From Eukaryota sp. TZLM1-RC (taxonomy: Eukaryota > Protista > Metamonada: BaSk clade), in the NCBI GenBank assembly GCA_040285825.1, contig JAUPSS010000003.1:2232001-2296000 (forward strand): 64,000 bases of DNA. The letters run 5' to 3'. Positions within the stretch are counted from its first letter, which is position 1, and each line of letters opens with the position of its first letter. Shown piece by piece: positions 10,725-54,259 of this stretch. Under the pieces are notes generated by a model that saw only the letters and a list, made by a program, of their open reading frames with translations, searched no databases and was not told the DNA's origin. The position numbers were made by a program, and so were the translations under genes.

Positions 10725-11504
10725 TCAGATCACACCACCAAATCTCCTATTCCGTTCAGAGTACTCTTTTAAACACTTGTTGAAATCCTCAACACTAAAA
10801 TCTGGCCAACATTTCTTAATAAAGATCAGCTCTGCATAGCAACATTGCCATAATAGAAAGTTGGACAATCGTTGTTCACCTGAAGTTCTTATTAATAAAT
10901 CAACTTCGCTAAACTCATGGTTGTACAACTCATGACTGATTGATTTAACAGAAACTTCTTGCCCTCTTTGTACGACTCTTTTGCAAGCATCGGCTATTTC
11001 CTCCCTGGAGGAGTAGGAAAGAGCTATGCAAACAAGAGTACCAGTATTAGAAGCAGTTTCATGTTCAGCTTCCAATAACATTTCCTGGGTTTCATGTGCG
11101 AAATCCGCCATATGACCAATTGCTTTGAATCGTACGTTTTCTTTGAGGACAGTGGATCTGTCATGTTTCAGGTAATAATCCAACGACTTTAGTAAATGTT
11201 TAACTTCACTTTCAGGACGATTCCAGTTCTCCTTTGAAAATGCGTAAAATGTAACGCACGGAACTTTGAGTTTAACACAGTGATCTATGATCTTACCAAG
11301 GGTACGGGCACCCACTTCGTGACCCTTGATTCTTGGAAATCCTCTTCTTTGGGCCCATCGGCCGTTGCCATCCATGATAAAAGCGATGTGATTGGGAAGA
11401 TTGAATTTGTAAGGAGCTTTTTGAAAGTACCGTTTGATTACTAGTGTAAGGATGTAAAGGAGATAAAATCCAATAAGGAGAAGTGGAGGTATGATGGGAT
11501 TCAT
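10725..11504 (-). CDS. cis-prenyltransferase (UppS-like) with N-terminal membrane anchor
   Basis: HIAFIMDGNGRWA, YAFSKENWNRP, DLLIRTSGEQRLSNFLLWQ, C-terminal RNRRFGG; first ATG at 11504. Confidence 0.92.
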   Translation of the reverse strand: MNPIIPPLLLIGFYLLYILTLVIKRYFQKAPYKFNLPNHIAFIMDGNGRWAQRRGFPRIKGHEVGARTLGKIIDHCVKLKVPCVTFYAFSKENWNRPESEVKHLLKSLDYYLKHDRSTVLKENVRFKAIGHMADFAHETQEMLLEAEHETASNTGTLVCIALSYSSREEIADACKRVVQRGQEVSVKSISHELYNHEFSEVDLLIRTSGEQRLSNFLLWQCCYAELIFIKKCWPDFSVEDFNKCLKEYSERNRRFGGVI

Positions 11505-12149
11505 TCTAACGAATGATGTCCGTAACAATGGTGTAAGTGTCCTTTTCACTACTGCAACGAGTCTGTATGAAAGAATTTAGATTCAAAAATCTTTGACAAT
11601 TTTTGAAGTATTTTACAACAAACTTGCAAATTTTAAAGAGATCGGTCCGGAATTTCCTGAATTGATTGAGGGAAACATATGGTGCACATTCGGGGTGGCA
11701 AATTTTTCAAGCTCAGAAGTTAGTGGGATATTAAGAACAATAAGAAACAGAATAGGAGACAAGACATCGCAGGGGAAAACCCCTAATTTTTGATAAATAG
11801 AAATTTCTTCGATTCTCAACGAAACCGAAGGTTTGAATACATTTACTCAATCAATTCAATGAAATTGATTGGAAATTTACAAAACCTGAGAACAAAATTA
11901 ATCAAGGAGTGTCTAACTGATCCAATTGTATTGGCCACATTCGTAATAATTAATTATAATAATAAATTAATAAATAATGTATTTTGTATTAACTAAATAA
12001 AATTTTGTTCTAGAATTCTATTTGGCAGATTCAATTGCGTTATCAAAAACGAAGTGATGTTGACTACCTCCACTTAAACCAGGTAAATAACCTTTTTGAG
12101 ATTTCAATATTATATTATTAACAATCATATTATATATTTATTTTATCAA

Positions 12150-22498: not shown

Positions 22499-23632
22499 TT
22501 ATTCCAAATCCGACCCCAGCCCAAAAATAAAACCTCTATCCAACGCATAACCAAAACCATCGCTAGAATCACCAATCAAATCTACAATTTGCTTACGAAG
22601 TTTCATGTTTTCGCTAACCAAGCCCAAGGTTTCGCTTAACAAACCCCTGAGGAGTTCTCTTTCTGAAACAGTTCTTGTGGAAGAGACAAGATATTCATAA
22701 ACTTGATGAATATAAGGAATTTTAGAATTGGATGCTTTTTTTGGTCGTTTAACGGGATTTTGTTTTTCTTGCTTTTGTGCAGGCAAAATTCCGGGTGGAT
22801 ACTCCATTGAATCTAGTTTAAGAGAACCCAGCATTTCTGTTACAGAGTCTTGTTGTGTTGAATCTTCTTGGTGGACAGCTTTGATATTTTCAGAAGCATC
22901 AGATTTTGTATCAGTGATTTCTGAAAAATTGTCATCAGACTTGATTTGTGATTGCTGGTCTGAAAAACTGTTGACGTCATCATTTTGAGTAATCACGTCA
23001 TCATTTTGACCTACTGATGACGTGGACAAACGGTTCACTGATGCAAATGCATTTTGAACCAAAGCAGCGTAATTTGGAACTAACGATGACGTATCGTTTG
23101 GTGCTGATGACGTGTCACTTTTGGTTTGACTATCCCACACTTGCTCCAGACTGGCATTGACCATTGATTGATGTTTCTTCCCCTTTTCGTGAGCTATTCT
23201 ATCATTAAGACTCATGGAGATTTTGCAAACTGGACACCAATGTAGATTATCCAAGGTACTGCCACCTTTGACGTCCAATGGCTTGTTACCTCTATTCTTA
23301 TGTACAAGGCTCTTATAATGGAGAATTGCGTTATGATGGCTTCCCTTGAAGATGCGCAGTGGCGTACACGAAGGACATTTTTGGACACAATTCTGGCAAA
23401 GAGGAAAGTCCTTAGAGCATGCAGGGTCGGGAGAATGTGAACCACAAACCTTGCACGAACCTTGAACTGGTGGGTTAGAGGACCTCACCAGAGTCCAATC
23501 TGGTGATGTTGGAGGGTGTGGCTGTTGTTGTTTGGCGACATTGGATCTATGACGTTGCCCACTTAGATGATTCGGTTTGTCATGCTGTTGAACATAACAG
23601 TCGCAAACTTCACAATGAAAGTCTTCGGGCAT
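22499..23632 (-). CDS. Multi zinc-finger (matrin/U1-like C2H2) protein
   Basis: CEVC..HLSGQRH, CPSC..HYKSLVH, CPVC..HEKGKKH; first ATG 23632. Confidence 0.8.
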   Translation of the reverse strand: MPEDFHCEVCDCYVQQHDKPNHLSGQRHRSNVAKQQQPHPPTSPDWTLVRSSNPPVQGSCKVCGSHSPDPACSKDFPLCQNCVQKCPSCTPLRIFKGSHHNAILHYKSLVHKNRGNKPLDVKGGSTLDNLHWCPVCKISMSLNDRIAHEKGKKHQSMVNASLEQVWDSQTKSDTSSAPNDTSSLVPNYAALVQNAFASVNRLSTSSVGQNDDVITQNDDVNSFSDQQSQIKSDDNFSEITDTKSDASENIKAVHQEDSTQQDSVTEMLGSLKLDSMEYPPGILPAQKQEKQNPVKRPKKASNSKIPYIHQVYEYLVSSTRTVSERELLRGLLSETLGLVSENMKLRKQIVDLIGDSSDGFGYALDRGFIFGLGSDLE

Positions 23633-23721
23633 TAGTGTAATTGCAGATCCATTCAAGGTTGAAAGGGTAGTGATGTTTGCTTAGTATTTTTTTGAAAGAA
23701 ATTCTACATCAACAAACTTAA

Positions 23722-29920: not shown

Positions 29921-32900
29921 ATGCAAATCCTGGCCAACGTCTTGGGTCACACTGACCAATACATCAATGACAATCTCTTCTTCACATGTCCTTTGTCATC
30001 CATCTCATTTGTCCCTACCCAAATTCCTGAATCATTATTGCCACATTTATTTCCTACTCAATTCGTATCTGGCCAACAACTTGAACTGGAGGAAGATAAT
30101 CAAGTTGAATTTAAAAGAGATTTAAGTCGTAATGAACAAACCGTAATTACTCGTGTAGGCCACCATTTCCTTCGCTATGCCAACTCTTTTCTCAACTCTG
30201 CTGGAGGAGTTTTATACGTAGGTGTAGGAGACGATGGTACCATTAATGGAGTTTCTATATCATCCAAGGGTATTTCTCAACTTAAAACTGCCATATCAAA
30301 TCATCTTTCCTCTTCTTATCCCCCCATACCTCCAGCTTTTGTCTCTCTTCAAGTTTATCCAGTCTACAAAGGTACCTTTCACACCAAACGCAAACTTCCT
30401 ATTCGTGGGACTCATATTCTCGCACTTGCGGTGCTGGCACATCGTGTTATTGGACCAGGAAGCGTAGTAGTAAGTAGTAAAGGTGTTGCCTGGGAACGGG
30501 TAGGATCTTCAACAAATCGTATACCAGAACGCTTTTTCCCTGCACTTCCTGACAATGATGACGTGGTACTCTCCAAACAATTCGGAGCACGTGCTTCCAA
30601 CGCATGCTTACGTGGCAGTAGACTACGATCTCGGTCAAAACCACAGAAATTGGATCTTCCCATTAATAAATATTTTGACACGTTTTGCCACGTCATCAAC
30701 AGTCATCGTGCTATCATTGTAACTGGGGGAACTGGTACGGGAAAATCGACACAATTACCTCAATTTATATTAGACTCTTATCCATCCAATCAATCAACTA
30801 ATCAATCAGCCAATCAAATTGATTGTAGACCTACCCCTACAATTCGTGTTTTATGTGCTCAACCAAGGAGACTTGCTGCCGTGGCCCTAGCTAACCATGT
30901 AGCCAAGCAGCGAGGTTGTGTGCTTGGAAGTGAAGTTGGTTATCATATTGGTATGTTTATTTTTTTATTTAGATAATTAATAATTAGTTAATTTTTTTAT
31001 TAATTTTGAATTTATTGAGTAATTGGAAATGATGGTAAATTAGTTTTAATTAATTTATTCTGAATTATTTTTCGTGTTATTAATTTGTTTTTTCTATTTC
31101 ATCCATTATTCAATGATCCAATTATTCAAGTTTTTTTATTTTTATCTCTCTCTCTTTTTTTCCAATTAATCACAGGAGGAAGAAAAGTTGCTGATGACAC
31201 CAGTAATATCGTGTTCTGTACGGTTGGCGTTCTACTTCGACTTTGTACCCAAGACGAAACCATTGGGGTTTATTCGCACATCATTCTGGATGAAGTTCAT
31301 GAAAGGTCGGTTGAAGTGGATCTTTGCTTGTATTTGTTGCGGTTACGGTTGAGTCAAGATCAAAATTTAAGGGTAATTGTGTGTTCAGCGACAGCGAACG
31401 TTGACAAGCTAGCAAGGTATTTTGGGGGCTTTAACACCTTTGTGAAAGAAGAGATCAATCAATCAAATAATCAATCAGTTATTGATACCAAAATTTTTGG
31501 AATTTTGGATATCAGTGATTCCTCTGATGATGATGATCATAATCAATCAAACCTACCCAACCTGCACCAAATCGGAAAGTTTCATCATTCAATTAATCAA
31601 TCATTTTCGACTGACACCAGAACTGCCCCTATTATTCACGTCGGAGTTTCAAATTACCCTGTTAAAGAATTTTATCTAGATGATATTTATTCTATTTGCC
31701 CCGAATTAACCGAAACTACTGAGCCAATGCAGTTTATCATTAACAAACCAAGATTCCATGGTGAAGTGTTGTTGGATGTTGTTAAGAAACTCTTCTATCA
31801 TTTACTACCCCGAATTGAATCTAACCCTAACCCTAAGTCTAATGGTCAGGTAAGTGGATCAATATTGATTTTTTTACCTGGAATCGGCTCTATCATGGAG
31901 TTTTCAGAAGGTCTTAGTCGTGCTTTCCCCAACAAATTAATTGTAACAATAGCCCATTCTAGTGTCTCTATTGAAGATCAAGGTATTGATTATTGGTCAT
32001 TGCTTTTCTGACCTCAGAAGTGATTTTCTCTCCTGCACCAAGGGGTTTAACTAAGGTTGTCTTGGCTACTGATGTTGCTGAAAGTTCCCTAACTGTTCCT
32101 GATGTGGTGGTGATTATTGACACGTGTATCAGAAAATCATTGACTTACAATCAAACATCACGTCATTCTTTCCTAAAAGAGTGTTGGATTAGCAAAGATA
32201 GTGCTATTCAACGGAAAGGTTTGATCTTTTCTCTATTTAATTAATTCTAGGCAGAACTGGTCGTGTTGCAAAGGGAGAGGTTTATAGGTTAGTCCCCAAA
32301 GCTTTTTATGATCAGTTTGATGATTTCTCCACGGTTTCCATGCAAAGTTCGCCTCTAGAAGATGTTGTTTTGAAAATTAGCGGGTTTAATGCGAATCCGA
32401 CACTAATTTTACAAGAATGTCTGGATCCACCAAATCTTTCCTTGATAGATTCGGTGTTACAATCTCTATTAGACCTAGGAGCAATTAGAATGGTGGCAAC
32501 TACAGAAAGAGTTCCCACTTTTGTAAGGACCCCCCTAGGTCAATTTTTGGCATTATTACCTCTAAGCGTTGAACTTGGTTTAATCATTGCTAGGGGAATT
32601 TGCATTGGAAAAACTGACTTAGCCATTGTTCTAGCTGCTGTTATTGTCAGATCTTCCCCAATCATTACACCAAAAGAACTTGCCCCAAAGGTATTCAACT
32701 TTTCTATTATGTTTAATTATAGGTTTTTGAAGCCTTTAAGAAGTACAGTGGTGGATATAGGTCTGATCATGTTGCCTCTATCAACGCTTATCACCAATGG
32801 GTATCTGAGTTTGAGAAGTTTTCATCAGTGCAACAAGAACAGTCTTTCCTAGAGTCTAGCTCACTTTCAGGTTTCTGGTTACGTGAAATAGATGATGTGG

Positions 32901-34349
32901 TGTATCAATTGAGAAACCTACTCTCTTTTGTTCGCATTGTAAGACAACCAAGCAAGTTGGACGGGATTAGAAGAATGAAGAGCTTGTGGAATGGTGGTGA
33001 TGAAGGTATTTTTAATTTTAGTTAGTTTTGTTAATTTCAGGATTAGGAATGGAGTTGTTGGATAGTGATTCTGAAGCAGAAGGCTTAGGTGTCGATAGGG
33101 AAGTTTTTGAGCTACATTTTGAGCCAGTTGTCGAGAATCCTGTAGAATCTTGCTTTGAAAATGAAAATGTAGAAGAAGTGATATCAAATTTTGATGGCTT
33201 TGTCCAATCACAGAGTGATTATCATGTTGATTGGTCCAATAATCGTCATGATTTGATTGGAGTTTTGATTTTATTATGCTCTACTTTTATTTCAAATTTA
33301 ATGGTTTTAAAGCCTGAAATTGATAAGAGCAAGTTCAATTTTAACAACATTGTCATTAGGGACCCTTCTGACATTTACAAAATTTTACTAACAGAAGTAG
33401 AGCTCACTCGTGATGAGCTGACAGACGTGCTAGCTCAAAATGTAGGTCAAAATGTCGAAATTGAGGAAATTCAAAATATTTATTCCTCTGCGAATGATTA
33501 CTTGATTTCTTTTTCTCCACCAATCACACATGACGTGCTAGTTCCTTCTTCATGTTACCCTTCCCAATTTGAAACTGTAATGAGACTCAACTCAACCATT
33601 TTACCTGCACAAAGAATAGAACCAGGTCCTTTCCCAGGTTTGGTTACTATTGACTATAACTAACTTTAGGTTTTCCATCCAAACCTTACTTGCCATTTTA
33701 CCCTTCTGAACCATTATCATTGCCAACGACTTCACTAGTGTATGGTTTTGGGATTGCTACGGATTTAAATATAGAATACGGTGTTTACGGAATTTGTACA
33801 AATAGCGTTTCATCCATTAAAAACGGCAGAGTTTCCCATTTTCCAAGGTATGGATCGTTGCTGCCTACCAATTGGCAATGTCCCCATTTAGTTTTTTTAA
33901 TTGTTTTTGGTAGCGAAGTCAATGTAATACCTGTCCAAAATGTACCTCGTAATTGGTTACTATATGGTCGTTTCGGTGGTGTCCTTTACCAACGAACGAT
34001 TATAGCAGATGGCGATGTGGTCTCGGAATTGGTTAATTTGAGACAAAAATATGCTGCGTTTCTTAATCTCAAAATGGAAGCTCTTTACTCCAGCTCACGA
34101 AGCCAAAAATTGGAGATGTCACGGTCAGAAACAAAGAGAATTCAGTCCGATCTTTTTGATAGATTAATTGATTGTTTGGAGAATAATTGCATCACTTTGC
34201 CACCTACGTTAATCAATCCAAGAACGAAGACCATGCCAAATCTTTCCCCGTTAGAGGTCGATCAGGCACGGGAGGTTCTTGGGTTGTTGGATATGGGACT
34301 TATTGGAGATACAGAGTCTTCATGCAGCTCTGGTAGTGAAAGTGATTAG
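29921..34349 (+). CDS. Schlafen/AlbA_2 domain fused to DEAH/RHA-type RNA helicase; 7 exons (introns 30951-31175, 31983-32017, 32219-32250, 32691-32722, 33006-33040, 33638-33669)
   Basis: N-terminal EEDNQVEFK..ANSFLNSAGGVLYVGVGDDG (Schlafen core); GTGTGKST, QPRRLAA, DEVHER, SAT, IFLPG, AHS, ATDVAESSLTVPDV, QRKG/RTGR, HA2-like TPLG and SDH; all six introns checked to keep the frame. Confidence 0.88.
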
Positions 34350-35399: not shown

Positions 35400-36330
35400 A
35401 TTCTATCTTATATTCAATATCCTCCAATAATATTTGCAGCTCGGCTGTTTTAAATCAAGATCTTCACTCATTGTTATTGGAAAAGGGTGTTTGTGAAAAC
35501 AAGGTGTCAGATTCTTCACTTTTTGTAACCATTGTACCACGAAGATTTGGATTGTGTGCTACTAATGAAGCATTTGTAACAAAAATGAGATTATATTTGA
35601 ACATCCCCATTAACCAATTATTATCAAAAGAAAAATGTATTTGTTCGAATTCACCTCAACTCACTTTGCGCCATGCTCTAAATTGCTCTAAATTGATAAC
35701 TTATCGTTCTTCATTACATGATGCTTTTAGAGACACTGTTTTCAATATGGCACAAACTGCAAGGATATCGTGTATCAAAGAGCCCCTGCTGAAGGAAACA
35801 CTTTCTCTGAATAATTTTGGTTCTGATGATAGAGGTGATGTATACTGTGATTGGATTGATAATTCTGAAGCTATTGTTGACTTTGTCTCATGTAATGTTG
35901 CAAACGATACTTTGGTTCACAGAAGAAAACTTAATCCTGTGGCTGCTCTGGATTTTAAAGCAAAAGAAAAACATAGAAAATATGATAAAGAAATTGAAGT
36001 TGCAAATGTCGATAGAGATACACAGCTGGTTTTTATTGCTTTCCCATTTTCGATAAATGGAAGATTATCAGTTGAAGCAGAAACTTTTTTGGATGACTTC
36101 CAAAAAATGGTGAAAGAAAAAACAATGAAAAGATTTGATATTTTTTTATGGCGTTCACGGATTCAATTTGCCATTATTAATAGATTACCGCGGTTTTTCA
36201 ATCGAATAAGAGAAGCTTTAGCTAGACAGCAAGCAAATCAAGATTTTGTAGAGGAAATCTTGGTTTAATGATAGTCGTCCCATTAGTTATGATTTAATTT
36301 AATCAAGTGTGCAAATTCAATAAATATAGC
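35400..36330 (+). mobile_element. 5'-truncated CRE-like element, family D, with intact RLE ORF (35471-36268) and 3' UTR
   Basis: CIC..HALNC..RSSLHDA.RD..EP..RGD..VDF..KEKHRKY..FPFSING. Confidence 0.9.
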
Positions 36331-36794: not shown

Positions 36795-39355
36795 TTGTCA
36801 TCGAAATCAAAATTTCGTCCTTCAGTAATGACGAAAGAAAAAATTGTTCGAAAATTAGCTTTAAAGGGACTCTATGGTTCCGCTAAGCAATGCCTGTTTT
36901 CCTCTGAACTTGCAGAATGTAATGAAAATACTGTTGCTCAACTAAAGAGTCTCCATCCTGTTGAAAATTTTAAGTGCCCTAAACCTAATAATGTAAGTTA
37001 TTGGGAGCAAAATCCCGTAACTAATGATGAACTTATTAAATTGATTAACCACTTACCATCTGGAAAAGCGCCTGGTCCATCAATGATCACTTTTGACATG
37101 TTAAAATCCACGATAAACCAATGTCCTGAATGTATCGTTGAATGGTTTTCTTTTTCAACAAAATTTTAACATTAAAAATCAAGCTTCCATCTGAAATGAC
37201 AAGTTCACGCTTAATTGCTTTAATAAAGAATGAATCAAAAATAAGGCCGATTGCAATTGGTGAATCTTTGTCTCGTTTTATTGCTTCAGCTGTGTTTGGT
37301 TAGGATTGGTAAAAAAGCTAAAGATTTTTTTAGTCCTTTCCAATTTGGAATTAAAACAGTTGATGGTGCATCTTCTGCAGCACTCTCTTCTGATGTTTTT
37401 TTTAATTCCAATACTTCGAATTATATTTTTAATTTGGATTTTAAAAACGCTTTCAATGCAGTGAAGAGGTCGTCCATCTTGCCCTTGCTTCAAACTCATT
37501 TTCCAGAAGCTGAGTCGTTCTTTTACAATTTTGATGGCTCACAGTCAACTCTTGTTTATGAGGAATTCAATCTAATATCATCATCTGGTGTCAAACAAGG
37601 TGATCCATTAGGTTCTTTCTTTTTCTTTCTTGCTATCCATCCTTTAATGTGTGAATTAAAACAAGAATTTCCAGATGTTCATATAACTGCTTATATGGAT
37701 GACTTATCAATAATTGGTCCAATTGATTCATTGAGAACAATTGCTGAAATTGTTCAACAGCGCTATTATGAAATTGGTCTTTCTCTAAATATTTCCAAAT
37801 TTTTATTGATTGGTAGAGAGCCTGCTGATTTCATTATTGATGATCAAAGTGTTCCTTTTATCAATTATTTTGAATCAGGATTTCGTTTTTTAGGTTGTTA
37901 TTTAGGCAACTTTGATGAAATTCGAAATCAACTTTCCTCTCTTTTGGATTCTTTTGAAGAAGAATTGATGGTTCTTTCAGATTTAAATATTGAAAACATC
38001 TTAAATTTTTCTTCCTCAGAATTTGTTATTCAGGGAAATTTACTCATATTTTACGATCAACATCACCATCTATTTCTCTCGAATTTTGCAGAATTTTTAA
38101 TGAATTAAGAACAAAATTTTTGGCTAATTTGCTCGATATTGATTCTTCTTTTTGACGTAGTCATATTTTTTGTAGCACAGAATTGGGAGGCCTGGATTTT
38201 CACAAATCAAATTATTTGTGTAAAGCCGCATTCATCGGTGGAGGAAAAAATTTCGTTTTTGAATTTTTAAAACGTTTTCCTGAAAACCAGCATTTGATAG
38301 AATGTTGTGTTAGTGACTATTTAGTGTCCTTGCAGAGTGAAATTGAATGCATCTCTCCTCACATATGGTCCAAATGCTTTCCTGCTGATATTCAAGAAAT
38401 TCCACCCAGGAGTTTGATTTCCTTGAAATTTGCATATGCTAAATTGCAGGAAAAGCTATTAAAAGTTTTTGAAAACTTGGATTTCACTGTTCGTCTTAGC
38501 TTGGCTAAAGAAAAGAATCCCGTTTTTGCAAACTTTTTAATTGACCTCAAGGATAGTTGCTCAAGTTGTCTTATTTCCCAGATTCCAAATGTATATGGTC
38601 TATTATTAAATGATCATCAATGGACAACTGCCTTCAGGATGAGGTGTTTCCTGTGGCCATTTAGTGTGCCAAATGATTTGATTTGTCGTTGTGGTCAGCT
38701 CATTAATCTGAATCATTTATTTAATTGCAAATTTAATATTACATATCGCTCAGTTGTCCACGATGCTGTTAGAGACCAACTATACGCTATGTGCAAAAGC
38801 CATCACATTGAAGCTTTTGTTGAACCACTTGTGCGAAGGTTGTCATCTGAAAATGAAAATGAAAATACTTTTGGGAAACGCCGTGCTGATATAATTACCC
38901 CTGCGTCTGATGGTGTTATTAAAGTTGTTAATGTTGTCACTGTTGATGTTTGTAAAGACTCAGCAATTGACTTTGCTAAAAGAGATGAAACTCCACTTTG
39001 CTTTGCTGAAAAGAGCAAAATCAAAAAGTACAATGAACCCTTATCTCAGCTAGGACGTGTTGAGCATGTTAAGTATCAGTTGGTTCCATTTGCTGTTTCT
39101 CTTTTTGGTAACATTGGAATATCTGGCATTAAATTTCTTGAAGGTTTCAAAAGTTTAATAAAAGAAAGAGCAGGAAAAGAATTGAACTTCAATTTCTGGC
39201 ACAATAGAATTGTTTTCAGTATTTTTAAAGCAATTCCAGAAATGTTGACCAAAGCACTGTTACAATTAGGAATAGAGTATGAAAATCGCGCGCTTAAAAG
39301 ATTTGATGATGTTGATGCGTGTATTGAGGATATTGAGTTCTACTTTTTTGTTTAA
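36795..39355 (+). mobile_element. Near-complete CRE-like non-LTR retrotransposon, family E (RT + RLE), frameshifted
   Basis: GKAPGPS, RPIAIGE, QFGI, DFKNAFN, GVKQGDPLG, YMDD, RFLG, GGL, CRCG..HLFNC..HDAVRD..RRAD..AEKSKIKKY. Confidence 0.93.
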
Positions 39356-42933: not shown

Positions 42934-45684
42934 ATGGCCACCTTCCAATATCCACCCTCTACATTTGCCGAGAAACTCTTCCACACGACTGATTTCTCCG
43001 ATGTTACTCTTATCTATCTTGAACATGAATTTGCTCTTCATCGCAACATTCTCTCTGTCTTCTCTCGATACCTCCACCAAATGTTCACCATTCCCACCAC
43101 TGACCGAGATCTACAACGCTTAGAAATTGAAAATCTTCCCATTGATGTTACCGTTTTCCAAGACTTCATCAATGCTCTCTATTGCCAGCCTTTGGAGATA
43201 ACTAACGAGAATGTTTTCGATATCTACTACATTGCTGAATACTTCAAGGCAGCCGAAATAGTGGAGAGAGCATTCTCCTTCATCCAACACCTCTCCTCTT
43301 CTCACCTTTTGAATGTCATCCAAAGAGCCGATGAATGTGTGCATTATTCCTTCATTAAGAAGTGCTGTCCTTTGCTAGATAAGCTTCTTCTAGACCGACC
43401 GCTAGTTTTGAAGGAAGAATCCTTTGAAGTTCTTTCTATGAATCTAACCACTACTGGCTCTATCAAATGGATGCTTCTTTCTATGGTAGATTCCTATGTC
43501 AAGGGTAGCATTTCTGTTGAAGATGTTGACCAAGTTTTGAAAAATTCTTTTGAATTGATTAAACAAATTGAAATTGAATTTATTTGGAATAAAATTGTCA
43601 AAGTTTTTGGTAATTTGGAAGATTTAACTGATGTTTTGTTGGAATTTTCAGTCAATTTATTACCAAATTTTGACCCTTCAAAAGCTAAAAATGATTGGTT
43701 ATTCTGGTTATTGATAACTTCCAATCAATTTGATTCACATTTGATTGAGGAAGTGGTAAACCAGATTCCTGGTATTTTTGACCTTGGTGAACGTCAACAC
43801 GTCGAGCTCAAACCAATCACATTAATCAAACTTTCAGGTCAATTAAAGTCAATCAATCACGTGATGTGGCTGATTAAAAGTTTCGTAAAGTCATGGTCAT
43901 GTGACCAAATTTTCTCACTCAAACAGGTCAAAAATGTGTTGACTTTGTTAGAAGTCAAGGATGTTCCTTTTGACTTTCTTTATTTTGAACTTTTTTCTCC
44001 CTTGAAAATGGATGACTCTTTATTAACTATTTTAATTGAATTTTCTATTTATTGTTTTGGAAATGTTAAAGATTTAAATAGTAATCCAAATTGGTTGGTT
44101 GAGACGATTGAACTTGCTGACCGTGAAAATTTCAATAGTGAAAATTTGGAATCATTTATGCCAAAATTTAGCATCATCAATGCTGATCCCATCTCAATCA
44201 AACCTCAAACTTTTAAAAAATTGAAGTCTGACAATCAAAATGATCGTGAAGTAAATTATTGGTTACTCAATACCTTGGTCACGTCATATTCAAACCAAAT
44301 CAATCAAAGTCAAGGCAATTCTGATTGGAATGTTGAAATTTTTGGAGAATGTCTTTATTCTTTTGATTTTGATCAATTTACTTTTGCTGATTTAAATGAA
44401 ATTATTTGGATTCCTCTTTCAAAATTTGATGAACTTGCTGTAATCCTGGTTCCATTTGTTGATTTATTGCATTGTAAAGTCTTCAAAACAAATGAAGTTC
44501 AAGAAATTCAAAAAAAATCCTTTGAAAAAGTATTTTTTAAATTGAAAAGCTCTGAGATAACCAGAATGGTGAGTGTTGAGTTTCGTCATCTTTTTCAATC
44601 AATTTTGATTGATGACGTGATTGATTTAAGCGATTCAAATATCGAAGCAGCTTTAGTTGATGATTTCCTCCACGACTTTAATAATTCAAATCATTTATCA
44701 GTAATAATTTCATTTATTCAGCGTTTAAATTCCAATAAGCTTAAAGAAAAACTTATTGAAGCTGTTTCAGTTCAGTTAACAGAACCAATTTCAAAGGCAC
44801 AATTAGAAATGATTTTAGGTCTTGAAATTAACCAAGAATTAAAACACAAATTGTTTATTCATTTTGTTTCTAATATTAATTCAATTAAGGTTCAGGATTT
44901 TATTTGGATTTTGAATCTTGGTAATGAATTTTCTTCTCAAATTGACTTTGAATCATTTATTTTAAAGATAGAATTCAATACCCTGTCTGAAATGGAATTA
45001 AAAACTTTGGTAAATTACTCAATTAAATATTCAAATTCTTGGTTATTAGGCAAGGCTATTGATCATTATGAATTTGGTTCAATTCCAGAAGTTTATACAA
45101 TTTCAGGTGATTTATTATTAAACCTAAATCTCTCTAATTCAATTAATAAAAACAAGGAAGAATGGTTGGAAGTGGTTATTGTTGGTAATTGTTCATTTGA
45201 CATTATTAATCAACTATGTCAAAAGTTATTGGGCAGGGAAACCAAATTCAAGTTTTTTAATACAAATCAAAGTGGTTCTGGGATGGTGTTCTCAGAAGGT
45301 AATAGAAGGGTTTTAAATGATTGTTGTGATAGTTCTAAACCTTGTAATTTTGCAGTAATAGATTTCAATCCTAATAAGTTCAAAATTGCAATTCAAAGGA
45401 GGGTGGCGAGTGATAATGAATTTATTGGGTTTTGGACAATGGATGATATTAGGAAGGGTAACTATGGTGGTGGTACTAAGTATTGTACTGGTGGTAGTCG
45501 TGGTTGTGGTTACTTCGCCCTCCCTCAAATGAACCAAGGAGACATTCTTTACGTCAATATTGAAAACAATCAAGCTACTTTTAGCTTAAATGGAAGTAGT
45601 GTTACCAAACCAATTCCTTCTGGAACTGTATTTGGTATATGGGCTTATTGGAAGGGTAGTGAATACTCAATTGTAGATTATTAG
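42934..45684 (+). CDS. BTB/POZ-domain protein with helical repeats and C-terminal beta-rich (SPRY-like) domain
   Basis: FSDVTL..FALHRNILSVFSRYLHQMF..FINALY..ITNENV..IAEYF; 916-aa intact ORF. Confidence 0.88.
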   Translation: MATFQYPPSTFAEKLFHTTDFSDVTLIYLEHEFALHRNILSVFSRYLHQMFTIPTTDRDLQRLEIENLPIDVTVFQDFINALYCQPLEITNENVFDIYYIAEYFKAAEIVERAFSFIQHLSSSHLLNVIQRADECVHYSFIKKCCPLLDKLLLDRPLVLKEESFEVLSMNLTTTGSIKWMLLSMVDSYVKGSISVEDVDQVLKNSFELIKQIEIEFIWNKIVKVFGNLEDLTDVLLEFSVNLLPNFDPSKAKNDWLFWLLITSNQFDSHLIEEVVNQIPGIFDLGERQHVELKPITLIKLSGQLKSINHVMWLIKSFVKSWSCDQIFSLKQVKNVLTLLEVKDVPFDFLYFELFSPLKMDDSLLTILIEFSIYCFGNVKDLNSNPNWLVETIELADRENFNSENLESFMPKFSIINADPISIKPQTFKKLKSDNQNDREVNYWLLNTLVTSYSNQINQSQGNSDWNVEIFGECLYSFDFDQFTFADLNEIIWIPLSKFDELAVILVPFVDLLHCKVFKTNEVQEIQKKSFEKVFFKLKSSEITRMVSVEFRHLFQSILIDDVIDLSDSNIEAALVDDFLHDFNNSNHLSVIISFIQRLNSNKLKEKLIEAVSVQLTEPISKAQLEMILGLEINQELKHKLFIHFVSNINSIKVQDFIWILNLGNEFSSQIDFESFILKIEFNTLSEMELKTLVNYSIKYSNSWLLGKAIDHYEFGSIPEVYTISGDLLLNLNLSNSINKNKEEWLEVVIVGNCSFDIINQLCQKLLGRETKFKFFNTNQSGSGMVFSEGNRRVLNDCCDSSKPCNFAVIDFNPNKFKIAIQRRVASDNEFIGFWTMDDIRKGNYGGGTKYCTGGSRGCGYFALPQMNQGDILYVNIENNQATFSLNGSSVTKPIPSGTVFGIWAYWKGSEYSIVDY

Positions 45685-46613: not shown

Positions 46614-47516
46614 ATGCCGTTGACTTTTCGCATACTTTCTGAAGTTAAATCGGCTCAACAGCTTCTATCACTTAATTTACATTGTTCGGAAGACACCAGG
46701 GCTCGCGCGTGTGCTGCTCACCATTTTCAGCCTCTCACTCAAAAAGAGATTGCAAAACAGTATAGTGTGTCACAATCCACTATTTCCCGATGGCTCAAGC
46801 AATCATTTGACTGTTCCCTGTGGGGTCCATATCGACGTAGAAGAAACAGAATACTAGACTCTTCGGAAGTTACTACCCTTCTGTCAATCGTTGATGTTGA
46901 TCCCCAGCTATTTTTACATCAAATGAAAAAGATAGCGTTAAAACTCTTTGGTGAAACTATGTCTGAAACAACACTTTACCGTATTCTTAAAGACGCAAAC
47001 TATTCTCACAAATTGTCCCAAAAAATACTGTCAAAATGTAAACAAAGTCTCACCAAAAGCTTCTCAGATCAATTTTCTTCTATTGTCGGTCCAGTTAATC
47101 ATTCTCAACTATTATTTATTGATGAACTGTCGTTTGTGCAGAAGCACTTTCACCAACGATGGGTCTGGTCTCCTGTTGGAAAACCTGTCTCAATCAATTT
47201 ACCCAAGGTTGCTGTACCACAAATTTCAGTGGTTGGTGCCATCAACAAGTTTGGCTATGTCTGTGGACATAATCCAATAGAGGCTTTTTTTGGACTGTTA
47301 CGACGACGTGTTAGAACTGATTCTTCCCGTTTTCCAGAAGCACCTGCAACTCAAATAATACTATCTGCTTTGGAAAGTCTACGATCATATGATTGTAGTT
47401 CACTGTTTGAGCACGCAGGATGGACTAATGGCCAGTTTTACCACTCACCATATCTAAATAATTCCAAATTGGCGAACTGTATTGAAATGGACATAGAAAA
47501 CGATAGAACTGAATAA
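46614..47516 (+). mobile_element. IS630/Tc1-like transposase, internally deleted
   Basis: HTH (TQKEIAKQYSVSQSTISRW), second HTH (SETTLYRIL), LLFIDE and HNPIEAFF motifs; the segment with the second catalytic D is missing. Confidence 0.85.
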
Positions 47517-51868: not shown

Positions 51869-54259
51869 TTAAAAACGAATTTCAAGGGAAGACCGACTAG
51901 ACGCCATTTGTTCAAGCATAGCCTTTACTGAACCTCCGATATGGGTTTTCCGAAGATCTAAAGTGGTAAGTGTTCGATTGTATTGAAGAGCATCAGCAAT
52001 GGAAGAACCTCCTTCATCACCAATACGTGTATTGTTCATGAGATTCAAATTCGTCAGTGTTTGATTAGATTGAAGAGCACGAGCAATAGCACAAGCACCT
52101 CTATTTCCAATCATATTACCATATAGATCTAAATTGGTCAGTGCTTGATTAGATTGAAGAGCACGAGCTACTGCAGAAGCACCTTGATCACCAATTCTGT
52201 TATTCCATAGATCCAGTGCAGTTAGTGAGTGGTTGGTTTCAAGAAGTTTAGCGATTGAAAAGGCACCTACTTTACTGATCTGATTGTACCGAAGATCCAA
52301 ACTGGTAATTGTTTGATTAGATTGAAGAGCACCAGCAATGTCAGAAGCTCCCTGATCACTGATCTTATTGTTCTGAAGATCCAAACTGGTGAGGGTTGTA
52401 TTAGATTGAAGCGCGAGAGCGATGTTAGAAGCTCCCTCGTCACTAATCTGATTCTTCCGAAGACTCAGACTGGTGATTGACTGATGAGATTTAATTGCAA
52501 GAGCGATTTCAGAAGCTCCTTTGTCACCAATATTATTGTTCCGAAAATCCAAATTGGTGAGCGCTGTATTAGCTGCAAGAGCACGAGCAATGGAAGAGGC
52601 ACCTTCACCACCAATGCTATTACTGCTCAGATTCAAAACAGTGAGTGTTTGATTAGATTCAAGAGCATGGGCAAGTACAGAAGCACCTTTATTACCGATG
52701 CAATTGTTCCGAAGAATCAATGTGGTAAGGGTTCGATTTGATACAAGAGCATGGGCGATAGCAGAAGCACCTTTATCACCAATTTGGTTTCTCATCAGAT
52801 TCAAACTGACAAGGGTTCCATTTGATCCAAGAGCATGGGCGATAGCAGAAGCTCCTTTATCAGTGATCGATTTACCAGAAAGATCCAAAATAGTTATCGA
52901 ACCATCAACAATACCCTCAATACTTTTTTTAACTACATCCTTCAACTCATTCCAGTTGACGATTGATTTAATCTCATTTAATACTCTTTCCTTAGAGGGG
53001 GCGTCACCTTTAATATTCAAATCCAATGGACCTTTAACTCTGGAATTGACTAGCTGTGACTCTAATTCAACGATTCGTCTTTGCAATTCAGAATTTGTAG
53101 ATTTAAGAGTGACAATTTGCGTAGCTTGTTTGTCAACAATAGCCTTACTAGCAATCAAATCTTGCTCCAATTGAGAAACATTAGCACCGATGGCGACCTT
53201 CTCTTCTTCTAAATCAGCTATTATTGCAGATTGAGCTGTGATGTCAGATTTGAGTTGGCTTTCTGATGAAGAAGGTGAATTGTCAGATAAATGTAACATT
53301 TTTGTTGATAAATCGACAAAACACAACTTGGAAAGTAAATTAACTCCATCAGTAAGATCCTCACCATTCTTGCTCCATTCTTCATACAACTTAACTATTT
53401 CAGATTTAAAGGCTTCACAAGCTTTTAAGTGATTTTCAAATTCCATTTCAAGCCTATTTTTCAATTTTTGGTTGAACCCTGTACCACTTTCAGTTTCAGA
53501 ATGTGAATTAATCATTTCATTGCAGAGTTTAGCATACAGATTTACGTAGTGAGGTTGATGTGTGATTGCCTTAACCAAACTATCAGTGAACTCGTCCAAA
53601 AGAACATTAACTTGGTCATCATTAAGAGCTTTGCTAACTGTTGATTTTCTAGAAAAGATTTCAGTAATCTCCTCAATGATTTTGTCCTTATTGGCACCAG
53701 AAAGCTTGTTCAAAAGCTCTCTACACCGTTTGTTGGCTTCGATACAGGCATCGCTCGGCTGCTTCACTTCTTCGTTTTGAGTAACAACACCATGATCATC
53801 AGCATTGTTGAGTAAGGGCTGGCTGACTAGATCGGACTCAGATGGGCGAGTACGAGACCTTGGTCTTCTACGTCTGGAGTTTGCTCTGGCATTTGCAGAT
53901 CTTTTGTTTCTAGTGCAGTTCTGAATAATGCTATTGTGTACAGAAACCATCTCTAGCAACTGGCTAGTTAGTTCATTATGTCCTGGACATTTATCTTTCA
54001 GACTCATAAGTTCTTGTTTGGAATACTGAATTGCTCCAGATTTCAATTGATGATCTTGCATAGTCAAGTAAATAAGATCTTCGTCGCTACTAGTTTCAGT
54101 ATCACTATCATCAGAAACAACATGAGACTGTACTGAAGCAAATGACCTGTGTATTACTTGGGGTTTCTGCTGAGTCTGGTTTGCTCCATGAAGTGGGAAT
54201 ATTTGTGATGGTTCTTCCCCGGAGGTGCAAGTGCGATCAAGCTTGTTAAACTTCTTCAT
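51869..54259 (-). CDS. eIF4G-like N-terminus (eIF4E-binding motif, Arg-rich patch, partial MIF4G) + coiled coil + RI/NLRC3-type LRR protein
   Basis: YSKQELM (YxxxxL-phi); RELLNKLS..QPHYVNLYAKLC..F..KL..EFE; ~12 28-residue LRRs (LTxLxLxxNxIGDxGASxIAxAL). Confidence 0.85.
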   Translation of the reverse strand: MKKFNKLDRTCTSGEEPSQIFPLHGANQTQQKPQVIHRSFASVQSHVVSDDSDTETSSDEDLIYLTMQDHQLKSGAIQYSKQELMSLKDKCPGHNELTSQLLEMVSVHNSIIQNCTRNKRSANARANSRRRRPRSRTRPSESDLVSQPLLNNADDHGVVTQNEEVKQPSDACIEANKRCRELLNKLSGANKDKIIEEITEIFSRKSTVSKALNDDQVNVLLDEFTDSLVKAITHQPHYVNLYAKLCNEMINSHSETESGTGFNQKLKNRLEMEFENHLKACEAFKSEIVKLYEEWSKNGEDLTDGVNLLSKLCFVDLSTKMLHLSDNSPSSSESQLKSDITAQSAIIADLEEEKVAIGANVSQLEQDLIASKAIVDKQATQIVTLKSTNSELQRRIVELESQLVNSRVKGPLDLNIKGDAPSKERVLNEIKSIVNWNELKDVVKKSIEGIVDGSITILDLSGKSITDKGASAIAHALGSNGTLVSLNLMRNQIGDKGASAIAHALVSNRTLTTLILRNNCIGNKGASVLAHALESNQTLTVLNLSSNSIGGEGASSIARALAANTALTNLDFRNNNIGDKGASEIALAIKSHQSITSLSLRKNQISDEGASNIALALQSNTTLTSLDLQNNKISDQGASDIAGALQSNQTITSLDLRYNQISKVGAFSIAKLLETNHSLTALDLWNNRIGDQGASAVARALQSNQALTNLDLYGNMIGNRGACAIARALQSNQTLTNLNLMNNTRIGDEGGSSIADALQYNRTLTTLDLRKTHIGGSVKAMLEQMASSRSSLEIRF

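Follow-up and report, generated by a model that had tools for sequence, protein, structure and literature searches.

The window analysed here is a 64,000-nucleotide stretch of the genome of the metamonad Eukaryota sp. TZLM1-RC (contig JAUPSS010000003.1, positions 2,232,001 to 2,296,000 of the forward strand), and all positions given below are counted from its first letter. Sequence comparison indicates that the gene at 29921-34349 on the + strand is an intact, spliced gene for a predicted bifunctional enzyme, in which a Schlafen (AlbA_2) nuclease domain is joined to a DExH RNA helicase. Most likely, and we hold this with somewhat better than even confidence, the enzyme serves in the surveillance of RNA or in defence against viruses or transposons. 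Because the AlbA_2 domain and helicase motifs I and Ia share one exon and one reading frame, the fusion itself does not depend on the prediction of splice sites.

The exons of the window were searched singly, each in its own frame, and two orthologues were used as full-length stand-ins for the spliced product. These are a hypothetical protein of 1275 amino acids from Eukaryota sp. GEM-RC1 (P0001) and a protein of 1425 amino acids from Eukaryota sp. TZLM3-RCL (P0002), both of which are metamonads of the skoliomonad group (PMC11316075).

The Schlafen nuclease domain

Exon 1 (29921-30950, + strand) consists of 343 codons within an open reading frame (ORF) that spans 29921-30976. From its start codon onwards it encodes a short N-terminal stretch, the AlbA_2/Schlafen domain, a linker of about 40 residues, and the beginning of the first helicase domain, RecA1, with motifs I and Ia, and it ends in phase 1. 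This assignment was made from the ORF, from Pfam and from a phmmer search of PDB, and residues 1-312 of P0001 correspond to 29924-30952. An earlier note on this DNA, made from its letters, had placed a Schlafen core and the start of a helicase in one frame in this exon, and the searches agree: the Pfam profile PF04326 (SLFN_AlbA_2) covers residues 58-200, and the start of RecA1 covers residues 240-343.

The match to PF04326 (30092-30520) was obtained at an E value of 1.4e-12 and 48.6 bits, with a cut-off of 25.3, and it extends over positions 1-116 of the 118 in the profile, so that the N-terminus of the protein matches AlbA_2 over nearly its full length. The E-x4-E-x-K motif that the earlier note had read as intact is formed by E58-D-N-Q-V-E63-F-K65 (E58, 30092-30094; E63, 30107-30109; K65, 30113-30115), and the GVGDDG motif holds D104 (30230-30232). 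When exon 1 was aligned with nine homologues that share 25-60% identity, all four of these residues were invariant, as were R85, N92, G95, G96, G101, G110 and T198. The residues E209, E214 and K216 of human SLFN11 are essential for its cleavage of tRNA, and Schlafens that are missing one of the E/E/K residues are nuclease-deficient (PMC9482658). The E-x4-E-x-K motif is likewise catalytic and essential in bacterial Schlafens (PMC13056530), and the CRISPR-associated Schlafen Cash needs an E-x4-D pair (PMC13462974). All of the residues that are known to be required for RNA cleavage by Schlafens are therefore invariant across the aligned family, and the AlbA_2 domain is predicted to be a metal-dependent endoribonuclease.

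The predicted fold points in the same direction. The AlphaFold model of exon 1 had a mean predicted local distance difference test (pLDDT) score of 55.7, with values of 65-92 in the AlbA_2 part. The best 29 Foldseek matches of this model in PDB were all structures of Schlafens, of the SAMD9 tRNase domain or of bacterial AlbA_2 proteins, and 17 of the 29 gave VIA-align Z scores of 8.1-10.1, the top structural match being the SAMD9 tRNase domain (Z 10.1). In the VIA-align superpositions, residues 40-176 of the model align to residues 191-322 of SLFN11, 187-318 of SLFN13 and 159-318 of SAMD9, and on the offset of this alignment E58 and E63 would fall on E209 and E214 of SLFN11.

The structural match is limited to the catalytic C-lobe of SLFN11. 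A two-lobed SLFN core was looked for in exon 1, and neither an N-lobe, for which the approximately 40-57 residues upstream of the AlbA_2 domain are too few, nor zinc-site cysteines in the equivalent stretch were found. The domain therefore resembles the single-domain type of SAMD9 and the prokaryotic proteins, and it probably needs pairing or oligomerisation. A word-indexed search for standalone AlbA_2 relatives with residues 40-215 returned nothing, a result of little weight given the limits that this search sets on length and its use of a word index.

The DExH helicase core

From residue 240 onwards, exon 1 matches the start of RecA1 in DHX29, DHX15 and other helicases of known structure (E of about 1e-11 by phmmer against PDB). 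The helicase motifs that were read in the exons, namely GTGTGKST, DEVHER, SAT, AESSLTVPDV and QRKGRTGR, belong to a core with an intact set of motifs (I, Ia, Ib, II, III, IV, V and VI) that does not vary among the full-length members of the family. Motif I (Walker A, GGTGTGKST) lies at 30725-30751, and its residues G269, G272, G274, K275 and S276 are invariant among the homologues; DEVHER, SAT, the FLPG of motif IV and motif V are invariant in the alignment of the full-length family members. The helicase exons gave PDB matches at E values of 1e-11 to 1e-15 per exon. The core had been described earlier as a complete DEAH core, and its completeness stands, with all motifs present and with Pfam DEAD and Helicase_C both matched, but the box of motif II reads DEVH, and the protein is thus a DExH helicase.

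A winged helix and a ratchet-like region follow RecA2. Exon 4 aligns to residues 981-1114 of DHX29 (E 1e-14), and residues 464-806 of P0001 align to residues 847-1185 of DHX29. These alignments uphold the HA2-like region that had been proposed, while the Pfam HA2 models found no match in the window exons, and exon 5 taken alone had no match in PDB or Pfam. Weak matches to STAND and AAA models were all confined to the Walker A segment and fell under the cut-off, and the DExH helicase is the sole NTPase of the protein. In NCBIfam, only sub-threshold matches to HrpA/HrpB were obtained.

Distribution and origin of the fusion family

A search of exon 1 against 1.84 billion representative proteins (clusters) showed that about ten proteins share the architecture, and that these come from metamonads, an archamoeba and environmental eukaryotic contigs. 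Exon 1 is approximately 50-54% identical to both the GEM-RC1 and the TZLM3-RCL orthologues, and the identity among the orthologues of the skoliomonad group is 45-67% per exon. Further members are a protein of Carpediemonas membranifera annotated as 'ATPase AAA-4' (P0057); the product of an uninterrupted ORF of 4395 nt in the Carpediemonas-like assembly GCA_002919055.1, which adjoins genes for actin, cofilin and kinesin (P0132); two paralogues of Mastigamoeba balamuthi that were automatically annotated as 'tdrd9-like' (P0006 and P0063); and proteins of environmental contigs (P0004/P0153, P0005/P0154, P0026 and P0206). The order AlbA_2, DEAD, Helicase_C is kept in all members except P0206, the ORF of which stops after the DEAD region, with a second gene next on the contig. 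P0153 is encoded by a single ORF of 5400 nt on the European Nucleotide Archive scaffold ZHAN23-2_SAMN33693013_METAG-scaffold_3023. That scaffold is eukaryotic, compact and apparently intron-poor, with a content of G and C of 65-70%, and the neighbours of the gene are Nkap, Tsr1, CCT and PARP genes, so that the family extends to a GC-rich eukaryote.

In a profile search, no member of the family scored below 926 bits, and the best-scoring helicase outside it reached 461 bits; the same search added no further members. In a phylogeny of helicase cores computed by maximum likelihood (quick search, 56 rows, 556 columns), which was built without rows for animal TDRD9, DHX29 and DHX36 and without the protein of the window itself, all eight full-length helicases that bear an AlbA_2 domain fell on one branch, with a support of 94 in the Shimodaira-Hasegawa-like approximate likelihood-ratio test. 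Because these helicases form a single clade, the simplest reading of the sequences would be that the Schlafen-DExH fusion had one origin.

Full-text searches of the literature on Schlafens, DEAH/DExH helicases and protists found no description of this fusion, and two recent overviews of the variety of Schlafen and SAMD9 proteins do not describe it either. The architecture had been put forward as one not recognised as described, which is borne out for the papers but not for the databases, where about ten proteins carry it. The fusion proteins form an uncharacterised family, and public databases already list its members under names that say little about them ('hypothetical', 'ATPase AAA-4', 'tdrd9-like').

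The third-best match of exon 1 was a protein of a different kind (P0003, from NCBI, 2337 amino acids, on a 401-kb contig), which lacks a helicase and is built from at least a dozen partial AlbA_2 units in tandem, one about every 180 residues.

Affinity of the helicase

In terms of similarity to solved structures, P0001 scored 255.7 bits with DHX29, 219.5 with Spindle-E, 197.5 with DHX36, 197 with MLE and 195.5 with DHX9, and DHX29 was also the top-scoring structure for each of window exons 1-4 taken singly. The nearest non-fused proteins in the databases were the plant DExH8 and DHX57-like helicases. The starred group of the tree in which the fusion branch lies also holds plant DExH8/ZC3H31-like helicases and further helicases of protists, and the group of DHX57 and the RWD helicases is adjacent. 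Similarity to DHX29, DHX57 and plant DExH8 (ZC3H31) is thus the highest over RecA1, RecA2, the winged helix and the ratchet, and these helicases share the starred tree group with the fusion family. They differ from the fusion family in their N-termini, which carry UBA/RWD domains, dsRBDs or CCCH zinc fingers where the fusion proteins carry AlbA_2, and most of them have a recognisable OB_NTP_bind domain, whereas no OB fold is detectable here.

Motif V is the feature that the protein shares with Spindle-E: it reads AESS-L-TVPD in the window and AESS-I-TVPD in Spindle-E, but AETG-I-TIPD in DHX29. The earlier note had taken this motif as a sign of a helicase like Spindle-E and TDRD9. The likeness in motif V is real, Spindle-E and TDRD9 belong to the same broad DExH clade, and Spindle-E is the second-best solved match, but its overall score lies under that of DHX29, no Tudor domain was found by Pfam in any window exon or homologue, and the family groups with the DExH8 and DHX57-like helicases. 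On these sequence comparisons, the helicase appears to be nearer to DHX29, DHX57 and plant DExH8 than to Spindle-E and TDRD9, as judged with a tree that had no animal TDRD9 rows. The assignment of the gene as an orthologue of the Tudor protein TDRD9 was rejected on two of these grounds, the missing Tudor domain and the higher score of DHX29, and is to that extent improbable.

Gene structure

On the + strand, the ORF list of the region 29921-34349 contains five long consecutive open stretches in shifting frames. Reading of the sequence resolved these into a gene of seven exons and six GT-AG introns, which are 225, 35, 32, 32, 35 and 32 nt long in this order. All seven exons are open and the splice sites are canonical. 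When P0001 was aligned to the window by tblastn, its residues 1-312, 312-528, 527-594, 594-752, 740-828, 874-1048 and 1048-1257 fell on the seven exons in order, and the breaks between the segments coincided with the predicted splice sites, so that the six introns drawn in the earlier note fit the tiling of the orthologue. The gene models of P0001 and P0002 come from an annotation pipeline that was trained on mapped RNA-seq reads, and they were checked with PASA.

Intron 1 (30951-31175, 225 nt, GT-AG) corresponds to the tblastn break between 30952 and 31175. Exon 2 (31176-31982) encodes the remainder of RecA1, with motif Ib (TVGVLLR), DEVHER (31289-31306) and SAT (31385-31393), then an insert rich in N, Q, S and D, and the start of RecA2 with motif IV (FLPG); it was identified by Pfam DEAD, by its match to DHX29 (E 1.5e-15) and by residues 312-528 of P0001. 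After intron 2 (31983-32017, 35 nt; sequence and tblastn break), exon 3 (32018-32218) continues RecA2; motif V (TDVAESSLTVPDV) lies at 32068-32106, and motif VI opens at 32209 with its QRK-G part. Exon 3 was matched by Pfam Helicase_C, DHX29 (E 1.1e-11) and Spindle-E (E 2.8e-11). Intron 3 (32219-32250, 32 nt), which was placed by the sequence and a tblastn break, interrupts motif VI.

Exon 4 (32251-32690) begins with the end of motif VI (G-RTGR), which is followed by the winged helix and the first portion of the HA2-like ratchet. Besides the match to DHX29 given above, it aligns to residues 502-634 of Spindle-E (E 2e-11) and to residues 594-752 of P0001. Exon 5 (32723-33005), which follows intron 4 (32691-32722, 32 nt; sequence and tblastn break), encodes the ratchet-like remainder and is 63% identical to residues 740-828 of P0001, a segment that in P0001 aligns to DHX29 up to residue 1185. 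Intron 5 (33006-33040, 35 nt) and intron 6 (33638-33669, 32 nt) were each placed by the sequence, a tblastn break and the orthologue alignment, and in the C-terminal alignment of P0001 and P0002 the joints between exons 5 and 6 and between exons 6 and 7 are continuous. Exon 6 (33041-33637) encodes an acidic linker together with the beginning of the C-terminal region, and exon 7 (33670-34349) holds the C-terminal domain, which ends in SGSESD before the stop codon. The last six residues are identical in the window protein, P0001 and P0002. An artefact of the gene model as the source of the fusion was rejected in view of the presence of both domains in one exon and of the two homologues that are encoded as single ORFs.

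Introns 2-6 (31983-33669) are all 32 or 35 nt long, and all of these lengths are of the form 3n+2. Low-complexity inserts rich in N, Q and S, which derive from AATC-type repeats and stay in frame, are located in exon 1 between motifs I and Ia (30785-30830) and in exon 2 between RecA1 and RecA2 (31455-31610). Over exon 2, the protein of the window exceeds the matching part of P0001 by about 54 residues, and the insert in this exon may in part be an unrecognised intron.

The C-terminal region

The C-terminal region of approximately 420 residues that is encoded by exons 6 and 7 is similar only to P0001 and P0002, with an identity of about 26% for exon 6 and of 38-41% to the C-termini of the two orthologues for exon 7. 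Pfam found no match in exons 5, 6 or 7, and a hidden Markov model of the three orthologue C-termini found no further match among 254 fetched proteins. The AlphaFold2 model of residues 800-1275 of P0001 had a pLDDT of 37. In terms of an oligonucleotide-binding (OB) fold, no match to Pfam OB_NTP_bind was obtained in the window exons or the homologues, and an hhalign comparison of the C-terminus with the OB_NTP_bind-containing tails of DHX57-like helicases gave a probability of 6.8%, while a language-model feature search gave a weak lead to OB_NTP_bind (0.80). The long C-terminus thus remains, as the earlier note had it, without a recognised domain, since neither Pfam nor the local model nor hhalign gave an assignment.

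Neighbouring genes

Just downstream of the gene are three ORFs (35471-36268, 37251-38108 and 38183-39355), the middle one of which matches RVT_1 (E 3.9e-15), and the cluster looks like a retroelement insertion. An ORF of 300 amino acids at 46614-47516 has HTH_23, HTH_32 and Tc3-type transposase DNA-binding domains and is probably a DNA transposon. Other genes of the window encode a cis-prenyltransferase (10725-11549, - strand; E 9e-78), a U1-type zinc-finger protein (22499-23656, - strand), a BTB/POZ protein of 916 amino acids (42934-45684), and a protein of 796 amino acids with a partial MIF4G domain and many LRR_6 repeats (51869-54259, - strand).

Discussion

The fusion protein can be compared with several kinds of known proteins. 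The group III Schlafens SLFN11, SLFN13 and SLFN14 are similar to it in that an N-terminal E-x4-E-x-K endoribonuclease and a C-terminal helicase-type NTPase are found on one polypeptide, and its predicted fold would superpose on their catalytic C-lobe. They differ from it in that their partner is of the superfamily 1 (SF1) type, whereas here it is a superfamily 2 (SF2) DExH/RHA helicase with intact motifs, a distinction that the earlier note had made and that agrees with the Pfam and PDB matches (PMC9482658). The protist gene also differs from the vertebrate genes in that its product has a single AlbA_2 lobe and no N-lobe, zinc finger or SWAVDL-type linker domain. Judged by its type of helicase, the fusion is independent of the vertebrate SLFN fusion. 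SAMD9 and SAMD9L and the prokaryotic Schlafens (pSlfn, Cash, SLFN-pAgo) are similar in having a single AlbA_2-type tRNase effector fused to a sensor or regulator (PMC13056530, PMC13462974). In contrast to the protein described here, their partners are STAND NTPase, Ig-like, Csx15 or Argonaute/GHKL domains, and none is a DExH helicase.

DEAH/RHA helicases translocate 3'-to-5' on single-stranded RNA with NTP, and AlbA_2 domains are divalent-metal endoribonucleases. If the protein behaves as its family does, the DExH/RHA core would bind single-stranded or structured RNA and would move along it 3'-to-5' by hydrolysis of NTP. The two activities could then be coupled in either of two ways. In the first, the helicase would thread a structured RNA and the tethered nuclease would cut that same RNA. 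In the second, the binding of RNA by the helicase would be the trigger, upon which the nuclease domains would assemble and cut tRNA or another RNA; this assembly would probably be an oligomerisation, because each protein has only one AlbA_2 lobe. The second version would follow the logic of a sensor joined to a Schlafen effector that is seen in SLFN11, SAMD9, pSlfn5 and Cash (PMC9482658, PMC13056530, PMC13462974).

The main alternative to surveillance or defence is a housekeeping role, in which a DHX29/DHX57-like and possibly ribosome-associated helicase would be combined with a Schlafen nuclease in tRNA or rRNA processing, RNA decay or translational control. We regard this as unlikely, although it stays the main rival because the helicase is DHX29-like. 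Of the solved structures, that of DHX29, a 40S-binding initiation factor, matches the helicase best. Schlafen nucleases have tRNA as a substrate, and a structure of SLFN14 in complex with nucleic acid is available, as judged from PDB titles. The orthologues of the skoliomonad group are also well conserved per exon, and their catalytic residues are strictly kept. However, the spread of the family is patchy, with few eukaryotic lineages and about ten representatives in the 1.84 billion clusters, which is unlike that of core RNA-processing factors; the C-terminus diverges fast (26-41% identity) and is not recognisable beyond the closest relatives; and paralogues occur in Mastigamoeba. Because of these three features, a housekeeping role is considered less likely than surveillance or defence. 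We infer a defence function for the fusion protein also in view of the characterised Schlafen nucleases, which serve in antiviral defence as effectors that are joined to a sensor domain (PMC13056530, PMC13462974).

Several observations weigh against this assignment. The case for it comes from sequence comparison and predicted structure, and the low overall pLDDT of the exon 1 model makes its superposition approximate at the level of residues. A single AlbA_2 lobe without the vertebrate N-lobe and zinc finger may behave differently from the characterised enzymes. The closest solved helicase, as noted above, is a housekeeping translation-initiation factor, the PADLOC defence models gave no match, and the gene neighbourhood in the window is uninformative on function. 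In addition, among the matches of exon 1, GEM-RC1 and TZLM3-RCL show one copy each.

A narrower alternative is that the protein acts as a Spindle-E/TDRD9-type helicase in transposon silencing by Piwi/Argonaute proteins, and that the Schlafen domain would serve to process the precursors of guides or to slice the RNA of transposons. This proposal is built by analogy with PUCH of C. elegans (TOFU-1/TOFU-2/SLFL-3/4), a Schlafen-domain nuclease that processes the precursors of PIWI-interacting RNAs and acts, in an RNA pathway of genome defence, on substrates other than tRNA (PMC10567574). The motif V of the Spindle-E form, where DHX29 differs, the rank of Spindle-E among the solved matches and the retroelement ORFs nearby (RVT_1 at 37251-38108) would fit such a role. 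PUCH, however, lacks a helicase and is a trimer whose Schlafen domains are carried by separate proteins, and no sequence-specific relation to it was found here. The protein has no Tudor domain, and its similarity is higher to DHX29 and to the plant DExH8 and DHX57-like helicases, although the tree lacked animal TDRD9 rows. A role of this kind is considered improbable, and more so than housekeeping.

It is more doubtful still that the AlbA_2 domain does not cleave and serves as an additional RNA- or DNA-binding module, as in the nuclease-deficient SLFN5 or mouse SLFN2. Some Schlafens do lack nuclease activity (PMC9482658), and the domain described here has one lobe and no zinc finger, but nuclease-deficient Schlafens miss one of the E/E/K residues, whereas in this family E/E/K and the aspartate are invariant down to 25% identity. 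Lastly, the inserts derived from AATC repeats within exons 1 and 2 might speak for an artefact in which the two domains adjoin by chance, or for a pseudogene in decay from which no fused protein is made. Such a reading is highly improbable given seven open exons, canonical splice sites that fit the orthologue to the residue, both domains in exon 1 and the same architecture in about ten other proteins.

Surveillance or defence is therefore retained as the preferred role, and it allows a more far-reaching proposal, which is put forward only tentatively. The family may be an effector of eukaryotic innate immunity or genome defence, in which a DExH helicase would sense and unwind viral or transposon RNA and would be coupled directly to cleavage by a Schlafen domain. 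Such a design would be convergent with that of the SLFN11-type proteins, it could be ancient in eukaryotes or have spread laterally among anaerobic protists, and it might be expanded into several paralogues in this genome.

Schlafen nucleases are now viewed as an ancient antiviral effector that has been fused repeatedly to varied sensor modules in bacteria and animals, and to our knowledge almost nothing is known of the Schlafens of protists. The family described here links a Schlafen ribonuclease to an SF2 DExH helicase, and the two active sites are strictly kept even between distantly related protists. Should its function be defence or surveillance, Schlafen-based immunity would reach into the free-living unicellular eukaryotes, and the protein would represent a naturally occurring 'unwind and cut' enzyme for RNA that has converged with the SLFN11-type proteins of vertebrates.

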